A stretch of DNA of 38,627 nucleotides from the NCBI RefSeq assembly GCF_001194135.2, contig NC_068995.1, positions 55,840,522-55,879,148 on the forward strand, written 5' to 3'. Source of the DNA: Octopus bimaculoides (Eukaryota). Under the pieces are notes generated by a model. It did no database searches. It saw only the letters and a list, made by a program, of their open reading frames with translations, and was not told the DNA's origin. A program made the position numbers and the translations under genes. Below, in pieces: positions 14,777 to 22,408 of the stretch; positions within the stretch are counted from its first letter, which is position 1, and the number at the start of each line of letters is the position of its first letter.

Positions 14777-14899
14777 TCAACCGGTTTTGTTCCACGTACG
14801 ATTTGCGCTATTCGAACACATGCACAAAGACAACTTAGTTTCAGCCGAATCTCGGAACTGTACCATCAATATGAAATACGTCACTAACATCCCGGCAAC
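14777..14899 (-). CDS. GRL gene A, exon 4 (terminal, TM7b with TYxxxxxQF motif)
   Basis: Acceptor ttgtttctatcttttcag|. Reads [49 protein letters not shown] is an exact match to the GR/GRL signature. Confidence 0.92.
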
Positions 14900-15103
14900 C
14901 TGAAAAGATAGAAACAATTGTAGTAGAAAGAGTAAGCATGGGTCAGAGTGGTCAAATGGTCAAAGGGTCAAATGGTCAAGAAGATCATGGTTTCGAATTC
15001 AATACCACTTGGTCAGTGGCTCGGACAAGTGTCTTCTATTCCACTATAACCCCAGGACGGCTAATGTCTCTTGAGTGAACTTAGTGGACAGAAACTGTGT
15101 AGA

Positions 15104-15228
15104 AGGTGGCGAGCTGGCAGAATCGTTAGCACGCCGGGCGAAATGCTTAGCGGTATTTCGTTTGCCGTTACGTTCTGAGTTCAAATTCCGCCGAGGTCGA
15201 CTTTGCCTTTCATCCTTTCGGGGTCGAA
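15104..15228 (+). mobile_element. SINE family A 5' half, fused directly after a family-B fragment (about 14975-15103)
   Basis: ggtggcgagctggcagaatcgttagcacgccgggcgaaatgcttagcgg ... gtcgactttgcctttcatcctttcggggtcga. Confidence 0.8.
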
Positions 15229-15669
15229 ATGGAAAACAAAACAAACAACATACAGAACGACCCTTCATCAGTTGTTGGCTGTTTTTCTAGTCTAGTATTT
15301 CGAGCATTCAACAGCAGATATATATATATATATGGAGCGAACATGACACAATGAAGTAGAGAAATTTGAAAAGACAACACGAAACCGGTTATTTCTCAAA
15401 ATACAATGTTTATNNNNNNNNNNTATATATATATATATTTGTTTATGTGTATATGGGTAAGTATATATATATCTATGTATATAGATATGTGTGCATATAC
15501 AGTATATTATATATACTCGCACTTATAAAACCGTTAATTTTTTTTTTCCAGTTGCTATAACGACTTTCAGTTTAGAGTGTTGGATTTATTTATATCGACA
15601 TAAATATCACATTAATTAGTAACTCATGACTTATTTTCAATTTGTAAATTATTCAATGGCCGGATTGCT

Positions 15670-16006
15670 ATTACCATTATCACAATCATCATCATCAACA
15701 CCACCACCACCACCACCACCATCATAATCCTCATCGTCGTCGTCGTCGTCGTCGTCATCGTCATCATCATCATCATCATCATCATCATCAATACAATTAT
15801 TATTATTATTATTACTACTATTATTGGGATCGATAAATTAAGTACCAGTTGAACACTCATCACCATCCCCCAAAATTACTGTCCCTGTGGCAAAATTTAA
15901 AATCATCATCATCATCATCATCATCATCATCATCATCATCATCATCATCATTATCATTATTATTATTATTATTATTATTATTATTATTATTATTATTATT
16001 ATTATT
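15670..16006. repeat. Compound triplet microsatellite (CAT/CAC/CGT/TAT)n interrupted by a SINE-A fragment
   Basis: Direct reading of the sequence. Confidence 0.9.
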
Positions 16007-16220
16007 AAAGGCGGTGAGCTGGCAGAATCGTTAGCGCGCTGGACGAAATGCTGAGCGGTATTTCGCCCGTCGCTACCTTCTGAGTTCAAATTCTGCCGAG
16101 GCCGACTTTGCCTTTCATCCTTTCGGGGTCGAAAAATTAAGTACCAGTTACGCACTGGGATTGATGAAATTGACTCATCCCCTCCCCCCCAAAATTGCTG
16201 CCATTGTGGCAAAATTTGAA
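16007..16220 (+). mobile_element. tRNA-derived SINE, family A (near full-length copy)
   Basis: ggcggtgagctggcagaatcgttagc ... ctgagttcaaattctgccgag(g/t)cgactttgcctttcatcctttcggggtcga...aagtaccagt ... caaaatttgaa, flanked by (TAT)n. Homologous copies seen at about 3943-4097(+), 5781-5920(+), 6865-6983(-), 9890-10008(-), 10060-10240(+), 15104-15228(+), 15826-15901(+), 17163-17376(-), 18340-18445(-), 31824-31948(+) and 36494-36707(-). Confidence 0.85.
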
Positions 16221-19360: not shown

Positions 19361-19631
19361 AGCGCCTGTTTCATGAAAATATTTCAAGGAATTTGGTTGC
19401 TATTTTTAGCAGGGGAAGAGAACGCACAGCGGCTCCCTCATTGACCTTCTAAGCATATAGTTATATTTAATAAAAATATATTTCTCTACTGAAATTAAGT
19501 TTTAGCAGAATCTTTTGCGCCTTTCATGGTCTTAGAACATCTTTCAATGAAATATTTAAAGGTTTATAATTTCTGTCGTCAAAAAAGCAAAGACGTTTCC
19601 TGAGAATTAATCGAAGATATCAGTTTAATTT

Positions 19632-20020
19632 GCAGGCATGGATGTGTGGTTAAGAAGTTCGCTTTGCAGCCACATGGTTTCTAGTTCAAACCCACGGTGC
19701 GACACCTTGGGTTAGAGTATCCTAGTATAGCTCCGGACTGGCCAATGCCTTGTGATAAATTTGGTAAACGGAAACTGTGTAGAAACCTATCGTATGTATG
19801 TGTGCGTGCGTGCGCGCGCGCGTACGTGTGTGTTTGTGTTTGTCCTCCACTACCATTGACAACCGGTATTGGTTTGTTTATATCCCTATAACTTAGAAGT
19901 TCGGCAAAATAAAGCGATAGAATAAGTACCAGACTATAAGGTAAGTACTGGGGTCGATTTGTTCGACTAAAAACTCAAGGTGGTGCCCCAGCATGGCCGC
20001 AGTCTAACGTCTGAAACAGA
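19632..20020 (+). mobile_element. tRNA-derived SINE, family B (full-length, internal GT/GC microsatellite)
   Basis: Head gcaggcatggatgtgtggttaagaagttcgc ... ttcaaacccac, body gaaactgtgtagaaacc, tail ataagtacc...ctggggtcgat...cgactaaa...ccagcatggccgcagt. A homologous full copy is at 31345-31798, with fragments at about 2878-3010, 10250-10415, 14485-14548 and 14975-15103. Confidence 0.8.
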
Positions 20021-20193
20021 GTGTAAAGAAAAAGGTCAAATATATTTGTTAGATGGAAACAAAGTACGTGGTTCAGTTGGTTATCTACGAGACATAGGTA
20101 CATTCGATCTGGGCCGACCTGAGACTACACAACAATATCTATAGACATAACAACAACAATAACTAAAGCTTAGAAAACTTGTCTTAATCTCAC

Positions 20194-20262
20194 CTCAAGT
20201 TCTTGTTCTTTCATGTTATCGTCCAAATGTAATCTGTGAAGAATTGGCAGCAAATCACGTAT
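20194..20262 (-). CDS. GRL gene A, exon 2 (23 aa)
   Basis: Acceptor tattttttcccctttcag|, donor gag|gtgaga, phase 0/0. Reads IRDLLPILHRLHLDDNMKEQELE. Same 69-nt length as paralog exon 34373-34441 and shares LLP.L. Confidence 0.85.
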
Positions 20263-21364
20263 CTGAAAGGGGAAAAAATACGCAGGGAAAAGTTAACAGA
20301 TTATTTGTGCGATTGTTTAATTTATTTGAATAATGTTTAATTTGTTTGGATAGTTGATATTTTGTAAATCAAAAAAAGAGGTGCTAACGTGGACGATATA
20401 CACTTTGGCATATCACCGCAGATTATTAAAACACTAAAGTGTTTGTCGGCTGGTAGATAACATCAACAGCGATATATCTCGTTAATTTATATTATTCAAC
20501 GCCTCTCTGACGGATGTTAATCGTCAAAGAGATGAATTACAGATAGACATTCCTGAAAAAAGCAGCCATGTATGGCCATCGTTCAAGAATCATTGTAGAA
20601 GCAGCAGAAAACTCAATTTAATTAATTTTTAATTTTTTCCATGTTTCTTACATGTTAATATTACCATTCGAAACGATCGTATACATGGATTAAAATTTTA
20701 CAAAACTTTTAACTTTAATTGTTTATTGAGTTTATATCGGATACGTGCTCATAACAGACCTTATACTTGTAATATTTTCATATCTAAAAAAAATACTTAC
20801 AATAGTAAGCTACCAATTTAATATGAAGAATCTTTATTAGAAATCTAACTTTGGAACCGCCCCCCACCCACCAAAGTAAAAGCTGAAATAGAACTCAACC
20901 TTTTCTCATATATATATATATATATATATATATATATGCATACACACACATACACACACACATGCACACACACATGCACACACACAAACACACACACACA
21001 CACACACATGAATGTATGTATATAATGTACGTGTGTGTGTTTCCGTACTATAGATAAGGGATTAATCGATTATATCAACCCCAGTATTTGATTGGTTCNN
21101 NNNNNNNNNNNNNNNNNNNNNNNNNNNNNNNNNNNNNNNNNNNNNNNNNNNNNNNNNNNNNNNNNNNNNNNNNNNNNNNNNNNNNNNNNNNNNNNNNNNN
21201 NNNNNNNNNNNNNNNNNNNNNNNNNNNNNNNNNNNNNNNNNNNNNNNNNNNNNNNNNNNNNNNNNNNAAAAAAAAGAACAAAGAGAATTAATAATAATAA
21301 TAATAATAATAATAATAATAATAATAATAATAATAATAATAATAATAATAATACTGTAACTGAC

Positions 21365-22408
21365 CTCAGCGTTAAGCTTGGCTGGAAAGAACAGAAGTGT
21401 GTACAGATACAGCAACATTGTAACATTGATAACGATGGAGAGGAAAATGAATGCAGATACTTTGGCAAAAAAGATTAAGTGATAAAACATCACGCAAAAC
21501 AAAGGTACTTCGGCGATCAACGATAGCAGTAAAAAATGCATGAAGCATTTATCCAGTTGGTAAATAGTATCACAGAGTCCCTGGAATACTTGTCGATGTT
21601 TTCCTAAATTTCGATAATGTAGACTGGCCGTATTGAGTTCTTCGTTCATGTTCTGTTTCAGTTTTTGCATGTTATTTATAACGAAGTAGCATAGAAACAC
21701 AAAAATACCTACAGATGACGAACAAATGGAGCTATTTATATATATTATAAATAGATCAAAGCACATTTCTACCCAGTTCGCAAAATATTTGTTCAAATAT
21801 TTGGGCCACATTGCGTCCATGAGCAGTTTAGACACATATCCAGAACAGAAGTGAAGCATCAAATGCAGAAAACAGCAGATTAGCGGCGCAATTATGGACA
21901 GACTAATGACAATAGAGAGAAACCTTTTAACTGATTTGGAATAACCCAACGATGCAGTTTTATCCATCATTATGAACAGAGCCGGTATTCTGTCTTCTTT
22001 GTAGAAAATCACCAGAAAAACGATCAATTTGATTAAATTTTCAAGCGACCAAATCAGCCATTGAAGTCTTATAAATAATCCTTCGTCGTAAATACCACCG
22101 ATTCCGTATGTTATCGTACATCGAAATATATTGAAAAGCAATATGGCTCCTATGAAAAGAGAATAGAACTTCCAGAGTATAGACGAGTGCGAAATGTTGC
22201 AGCGTTCGAAACACATTCCACAAATTTTCATTGATAAAATTAATATTCTTATCGATTTATAAATCGTTGTTTTTGTATAGTTCGATGTGGAATGGTTTTG
22301 TAAATTTGGTGGCGCAATGTCGATCGTATGGCTAAATACTTTACACCTTTGAGTGGAGTCGATATTTATACGAGAATTACCACAGATGAAATGAATAAAC
22401 TTGGGCAT
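21365..22408 (-). CDS. Gustatory receptor-like (GRL; 7tm_7-type 7TM ion channel) gene A, exon 1 (348 aa, TM1-TM6)
   Basis: Long non-repetitive ORF with about six hydrophobic segments, ending ...FFPAKLNAE at a phase-0 donor gag|gtcagt. It aligns by eye with the 30111 ORF (L.L.M...GM, LW..YSL..G, LF...QW, FV.LC, FY.LIFF). Confidence 0.9.

Follow-up and report, generated by a model that had tools for sequence, protein, structure and literature searches.

The window analysed here, i.e. the whole 38,627-nucleotide (nt) stretch of the Octopus bimaculoides genome from position 55,840,522 to 55,879,148 of contig NC_068995.1 (assembly GCF_001194135.2), carries on its minus strand, between positions 14,777 and 22,408, a gene of the gustatory receptor-like (GRL) family that we call GRL-A. 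We read the locus on the minus strand and spliced it by script; all coordinates are window positions unless another locus is named. Taken together, the results indicate that GRL-A is very probably a functional, single-copy O. bimaculoides gene with four exons and three phase-0 introns, encoding a 441-amino-acid (aa) GRL protein of the 7TMIC (insect GR/OR) superfamily. The analysis shows the structure of the gene, its family membership, its fold, its conservation and the purifying selection acting on it. The gene itself is already public, as a UniProt "Gustatory receptor", and the only new result is the corrected gene model.

Splicing re-derived exactly the four-exon model proposed in a first-pass annotation of the sequence, with exons of 348, 23, 30 and 40 codons, GT-AG at every junction and no stop in the frame. 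The exons measure 1044, 69, 90 and 123 nt, giving 1326 nt (441 codons and a TGA, with no internal stops) in a gene that spans 7.6 kb. All three introns are GT..AG introns in phase 0, with a pyrimidine-rich tract before each AG (donors gtcagt, gtgaga and gtaagt; acceptors ttcag, tctag and ttcag), and the protein reads across the three junctions as ...LNAE/IRDL..., ...ELE/LLMF... and ...LLT/VAGMLVTYF. Exon 1 (21365..22408) runs for 348 codons from the ATG at 22408 to ...FFPAKLNAE and encodes the N-terminus and transmembrane helices (TM) 1 to 6. There is an in-frame TAA 6 nt (two codons) upstream of this ATG, and therefore the frame cannot extend 5' within exon 1. Exon 2 (20194..20262; 23 codons, IRDLLPILHRLHLDDNMKEQELE) supplies the end of TM6, a predicted cytoplasmic turn and the start of TM7a, and exon 3 (17738..17827; 30 codons, LLMFVNQLSGPDIGLTACDIIVITRQTLLT) supplies TM7a, a beta-hairpin and the start of TM7b. 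Exon 4 (14777..14899) encodes TM7b and a predicted extracellular tail, in which N-x-T sequons occur at aa 434 and 438; its 40 aa exclude the stop codon at 14779-14777, which is a small correction to the first-pass model.

The locus appears in the list of open reading frames (ORFs) only as a read-through ORF (21062..22408) that leaves exon 1, passes through (ATT)n translated as poly-isoleucine and runs into a gap of Ns, just as had been described from the ORF track. The accompanying description of the gene as hidden does not hold beyond that prokaryote-style track, as the gene is already in UniProt (A0A0L8FSD6) and, in part, in the O. vulgaris annotation (CAI9733792.1).

The GRL-A protein is a true member of the GR/GRL (7TMIC) family. 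It matched the Pfam 7tm_7 profile (PF08395) with 29.5 bits (the gathering cut-off is 26.6), aa 54-417 lying on profile positions 2-367 of 370; the O. vulgaris orthologue scored 27.8 bits. We searched 1.84 billion representative proteins exhaustively with HMMER and obtained 154 homologues at E<=1e-3, including a Lottia gigantea GR (V4AUT3), a Mactra 'trehalose receptor', GRs of Owenia and Capitella, proteins of Lineus and Antedon, and Nematostella Grl2, with annelid, nemertean and echinoderm groups represented. The 'sugar taste' names carried by database entries in this family are similarity transfers and are not evidence of sugar sensing. In a multiple alignment the octopus protein was continuous with its homologues over all three junctions and shared with them both the TY....QF motif and a C-terminal CxCNxT tail. 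The strict form of the GR signature, TYhhhhhQF, which the first-pass annotation had called perfect, is matched exactly by TYFILMVQF (T408 to Q415 and F416; codons at 14855..14881, minus strand), and no other match occurs in the window in any of the six frames. Searching PDB sequences by phmmer with the single protein sequence gave no match. When the family profile was used against the same sequences, Drosophila Gr64a was matched over the full length (E = 8e-28), all 17 of the 17 matches were GR, OR or Orco proteins, and the GRL-A motif was aligned to GTIVTYELVLLQF of Gr64a.

The gene structure has a parallel in the gastropod Lottia gigantea, whose GRL (V4AUT3 / XP_009051427.1, 440 aa) aligns to aa 41-432 of GRL-A at 29% identity (E = 3e-40) and has both the TYF..LVQF motif and the CxCNxT tail in common with it. 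The Lottia gene (locus L003) has four exons of 358, 22, 30 and 30 codons, all in phase 0, with the junctions ...INVA/AHTP..., ...QQIQ/LIMF... and ...TILT/VIGMLITYF, so that the three phase-0 introns of the two genes fall in the same alignment columns; its introns are much shorter, giving a gene of 3.1 kb as opposed to 7.6 kb. Three C-terminal phase-0 introns, the last of them just before the exon with the TM7 motif, are a hallmark of GR/GRL genes and represent the ancestral GR structure (PMC5203786, PMC2680840, PMC9998090, PMC7746228). GRL-A fits this hallmark exactly, with its last intron 6 codons before the TY. A more distant full-length homologue is Gustatory receptor-like 2 of Nematostella vectensis (A0A0C5GWD8; E = 6e-11, aa 69-417), which differs in having only ~19-23% identity and a variant of the motif, GY...LVQF.

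For comparison between octopus species we used the orthologous stretch of Octopus vulgaris (locus L001), taken from OX597828.1 in a chromosome-level assembly without gaps. There the four exons of the orthologue have identical lengths and identical splice dinucleotides, and they encode an intact 441-aa protein. Its exon 1 (L001 15150-16193) has 91.7% aa identity to that of O. bimaculoides, and the end of this exon lies in the same alignment column in Lottia and in a further contig, L002; exon 4 shows 100% aa identity, with 3 synonymous changes and no replacement changes. By the Nei-Gojobori method the rates of nonsynonymous (dN) and synonymous (dS) change were 0.031 and 0.151 (dN/dS = 0.21, falling to 0.09 for exons 2-4 together), and the synonymous excess was significant (Fisher p = 2.5e-10). 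There were no indels in the 1326 coding nt, compared with ~7 gap openings per kb in the flanking non-coding alignments of the two species. Exon 3 and its AG and GTAAGT boundaries were also kept in two more diverged genomic contigs (L005 and L009), whose flanks were unalignable to both octopus sequences. These comparisons of sequence support purifying selection on GRL-A. Such selection had been suggested in the first-pass annotation, with dN/dS against orthologues as the check, and the value of 0.21 bears the suggestion out. The argument originally offered for it, i.e. that the motif is intact despite repeat-laden introns, is no evidence by itself, because repeats in introns are normal; it is the comparison of orthologues, and not the repeats, that reveals the selection. 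A different suspicion could be drawn from those same repeat-filled introns, and from the common occurrence of pseudogenes in GR families, namely that GRL-A is an unexpressed or recently decaying relic whose frame is intact by chance. However, the frame is intact in two species at the dN/dS given above, with no indels and with conserved splice sites, and two further genomes have kept exon 3 while their flanks have diverged beyond alignment; we consider a relic highly improbable.

The introns themselves hold many microsatellites and at least two interspersed repeat families with further copies elsewhere in the window. Intron 1 (20263..21364, donor gtcagt) contains (ATT)n at 21289-21353, an assembly gap at 21099-21267 and (AC)n/(AT)n at 20908-21008. 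In intron 2 (17828..20193, donor gtgaga), an interspersed repeat at 19632-20018 resembles 31344-31788. Intron 3 (14900..17737, donor gtaagt) has a gap of 10 Ns (15414-15423), several microsatellites and copies resembling short interspersed nuclear elements (SINEs) at 15103-15229, 15902-16233 and 17165-17379, which resemble 36484-36816 and 6876-7009. The introns had been described as laden with SINEs and long interspersed nuclear elements (LINEs), and the first half of this stands, 'SINE-laden' being a fair description; LINEs were not confirmed, in that Pfam scans of three intron ORFs gave no transposon domain. One of the ORFs, of 97 aa in intron 2 (18975-19268, plus strand; ..LYRAEAW.. and ..RRLWLDDIKRK), had no Pfam match; it resembles the C-terminal part of a non-LTR (long terminal repeat) retrotransposon ORF2, which is a lead only. 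ARAGORN called a tRNA-Glu(TTC) at 7012-7085 (plus strand), adjoining the repeat copy at 6876-7009 whose family is also present in intron 3, and this may be either part of a tRNA-related SINE or a genuine tRNA gene.

Both public models of the gene are wrong, in different ways: the O. bimaculoides model lacks exon 2 and the O. vulgaris model lacks exon 1. The former, UniProt A0A0L8FSD6_OCTBM ('Gustatory receptor', 413 aa), is the same gene, being residue-identical over exon 1, exon 3 and most of exon 4. It differs in omitting the 23 aa of exon 2 and in ending ...SNSANPT, through use of an alternative GT donor (C/GTACGT; GT at 14798..14799, minus strand, after 14800) inside exon 4, and as a consequence of these differences it falls below the Pfam 7tm_7 cut-off. 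The latter, CAI9733792.1 ('gustatory receptor for sugar taste 61a-like', 249 aa, from OX597828.1), is the orthologue and shares exons 2-4 and the C-terminus ...RTWNKTG, but omits the intact exon 1 (see above) in favour of a spurious 5' end. That 5' end is an ORF that traverses a tandem repeat of 66 bp, or 22 codons (MSYTSDKDVLYIRQRCPIH..), at L001 10001-10366, with a window counterpart at 27152-27301, and the next exon of the model (L001 ~21137-21241) sits in a species-specific repeat-rich insertion; the 5' structure looks like a mis-annotation. Neither the exact 441-aa sequence of O. bimaculoides nor that of O. vulgaris was present in a collection of 15 billion proteins. The 441-aa model is the correct full-length one and is better than both public models.

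Exon 2 is real, on five counts: the Pfam profile, a conserved block in the homologues, the Lottia exon, its conservation in O. vulgaris and the structure model. With exon 2 included, the Pfam 7tm_7 match is full length at 29.5 bits; with exon 2 removed, it drops to 20.8 bits, below the cut-off, and becomes local only. The segment aligns to the conserved block AxVNxxAHxxLxxLHxI in 14 of the 14 aligned homologues, and Lottia has an equivalent short phase-0 exon. In O. vulgaris the exon (L001 24218-24286) has kept its length, its frame and both splice sites, and is included in the public model of that species. The AlphaFold2 model described below is confident throughout the segment, with a predicted local distance difference test score (pLDDT) of 92-97. 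At the C-terminus, an exon 4 that is left unspliced is favoured over use of the internal donor, both by the O. vulgaris model and by aa conservation as far as ...RTWNKTG.

The alternative is that the published 413-aa protein is the true product, with exon 2 skipped and exon 4 spliced internally, and that what we call exon 2 is intron sequence that happens to be open in frame; skipping 69 nt does leave the frame intact. Several observations weigh against our model at this point. The junctions of GRL-A are placed only by homology and conservation, with indirect support for their use in transcripts coming solely from the O. vulgaris model, which joins exons 2, 3 and 4. In the O. bimaculoides model of 2015, exon 2 is skipped and the internal donor of exon 4 is used, and alternative isoforms are possible. 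The DNA identity of exon 2 to O. vulgaris is 91% (63/69), compared with ~90.6% for the surrounding intron, and because it is no higher than that of the intron, conservation alone would not settle the status of exon 2. In addition, H350 (window 20259-20257), which is nearly invariant in the homologues at the start of the exon 2 segment (AH..L..LH), is R in both octopuses. Nevertheless, given the sub-threshold, local Pfam match of the exon-2-less protein, the presence of the segment in every aligned homologue, the Lottia exon, the retention of exon 2 in O. vulgaris and the confident structure prediction through it, it is very unlikely that the 413-aa form is the true product.

The four-exon, 441-aa model also depends on the assembly, which has two gaps within the gene. 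Both gaps are intronic (21099-21267 in intron 1 and 15414-15423 in intron 3), and so the reading frame across them is not an issue. They could nevertheless conceal an extra coding exon or a mis-join, which would make the 441-aa product incomplete or chimeric, and it is relevant that intron 1 of O. vulgaris is ~7 kb longer and contains one of the exons of the public model of that species (the one at L001 ~21137-21241). However, over the whole GRL-A gene and both gaps the minus strand of the window runs collinear with the O. vulgaris chromosome, which is gapless, intron 1 pairing with L001 16194-24217 and intron 3 with L001 27112-34574, and the counterpart of the first gap (~L001 17000-17270) is non-coding. 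The extra O. vulgaris DNA is of two kinds, an element of ~640 bp that interrupts the (ATT)n tract and ~6 kb of repeat-rich sequence, and the ~6-kb block (L001 17798-23852) lies opposite an ungapped point of the window (~20615/20616) and not opposite a gap. This block is without an O. bimaculoides counterpart and consists mostly of repeats with other copies in the window; either one lineage has gained it or the other has lost it. A tblastn search of L001 with 15 divergent GRL proteins matched only the four exons and a neighbouring paralogue, and the O. vulgaris introns yielded no additional GRL-like exon. The alignments to homologues and to the Pfam profile likewise show no missing block at any junction, and the Lottia gene has exactly four exons. 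A concealed exon or mis-join is therefore extremely improbable.

We built an AlphaFold2 model of the 441-aa protein on an alignment of 75 sequences (pLDDT 88.3; predicted template modelling score, pTM, 0.87). The model has very long TM4-TM6 helices (211-260, 268-313 and 318-350), TM7a at 366-380, a beta-hairpin at 387-392 and TM7b at 396-432, the last of which contains the motif. A Foldseek search of the PDB returned insect GR, OR and Orco structures as all of its top 23 matches (E 1.7e-8 to 3.4e-5, TM-score 0.6-0.75), the next match having E = 0.5. The same fold is thus found in Drosophila Gr64a (PDB 8JME and 8ZE0), Gr43a, BmGr9, MhOR5 and Orco (6C70), although their identity to GRL-A is only 13-17%; the insect proteins and the GRL-A model have in common a TM7 split into TM7a and TM7b with a hairpin, and long TM4-6 (PMC12635824). 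The hydropathy profile has seven peaks. Counts of charges and sequons show K+R enrichment at the N-terminus and in loops 2-3 and 4-5, and place the N-x-T sequons in the C-terminal tail, a pattern consistent with a putative intracellular N-terminus and extracellular C-terminus.

The first-pass annotation had noted that the motif region lines the pore gate in solved GR/OR structures, and the model agrees with this in that the motif sits in TM7b, the predicted pore-lining helix; the TYhhhhhQF motif has a role in the pore and gate of GR/OR structures (PMC12635824). By analogy with those insect structures (PMC12635824), four GRL-A subunits would form a tetramer whose central pore is lined by TM7b, with Q415 and F416 of TYFILMVQF as the putative extracellular gate. 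On the same analogy, the long cytoplasmic helices of TM4-6 and TM7a would form an anchor domain, and every subunit would have a ligand site inside its helical bundle, binding at which would open a cation pore. For both channel activity and tetramerisation the extrapolation is from insect proteins at 13-17% identity, and we know of no mollusc GRL with a demonstrated ligand or function. Furthermore, some GRLs are not chemoreceptors, as with Nematostella Grl1, which acts in development according to work cited in PMC5203786.

GRL-A is an ordinary, already catalogued member of its family; the new model is a useful annotation fix and leaves the current understanding of the family unchanged. Phylogenies, expression probes and heterologous expression should be based on the corrected 441-aa sequence. 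Research on octopus chemosensation has centred on nicotinic-derived chemotactile receptors, and a well-supported, constrained GRL provides a defined candidate for asking whether 7TMIC channels contribute to cephalopod sensing. Our search, which covered part of the literature, found no paper describing GRL genes of octopuses or other cephalopods, a result that does not establish that none exists.

A second GRL gene, GRL-B, lies on the plus strand of the window (30111-31184 and 36325-36414), head-to-head with GRL-A and with the start codons 7.7 kb apart. Its exon 1 has 358 codons and ends ...AARVGFS/gtaagt in the same column as the end of GRL-A exon 1, and its candidate exon 3 has 30 codons in phase 0 (MLLLLSKLNGQQVGLTVLHLFVVSWRTILK) flanked by ag and gtaagt. 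Exons 2 and 4 of GRL-B were not found, there was no TY..QF downstream within the window, and exon 1 alone fell short of Pfam 7tm_7. GRL-B is ~20% identical to GRL-A, its best homologue being P0022 (38%). The arrangement of the two genes is conserved in O. vulgaris, with GRL-B at L001 2215-1232 (minus strand). GRL-A could be placed in a slowly evolving, low-copy GRL lineage that never underwent massive expansion, comprising cephalopods, gastropods, bivalves, annelids, nemerteans, echinoderms and the cnidarian Grl2, in which the GRL-A/GRL-B pair would form an Orco/OR-like heteromer with a conserved, possibly non-chemosensory role (developmental or internal-state) and not a role in taste, but we regard this as a speculative and rather unlikely reading.

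Two further loci touch on these genes. An exon-1-only GRL, P0003 (350 aa), was found at 10001-11053 of L002 (ENA ERZ21867824 ctg104916l), an 81-kb eukaryotic contig of a metagenome assembly that possibly derives from a distant cephalopod. It is 36% identical to GRL-A, as opposed to 24% to GRL-B, and ends at the same exon boundary (..AWINTE/gt); exons 2-4 were not found in the 10 kb downstream, the introns probably being longer than this flank. Finally, a PDZ-domain gene was called at L001 40491-44697 (minus strand in that locus), and the syntenic part of the window downstream of GRL-A, at 11323-12311, which corresponds to L001 43451-44575, may hold its exons.

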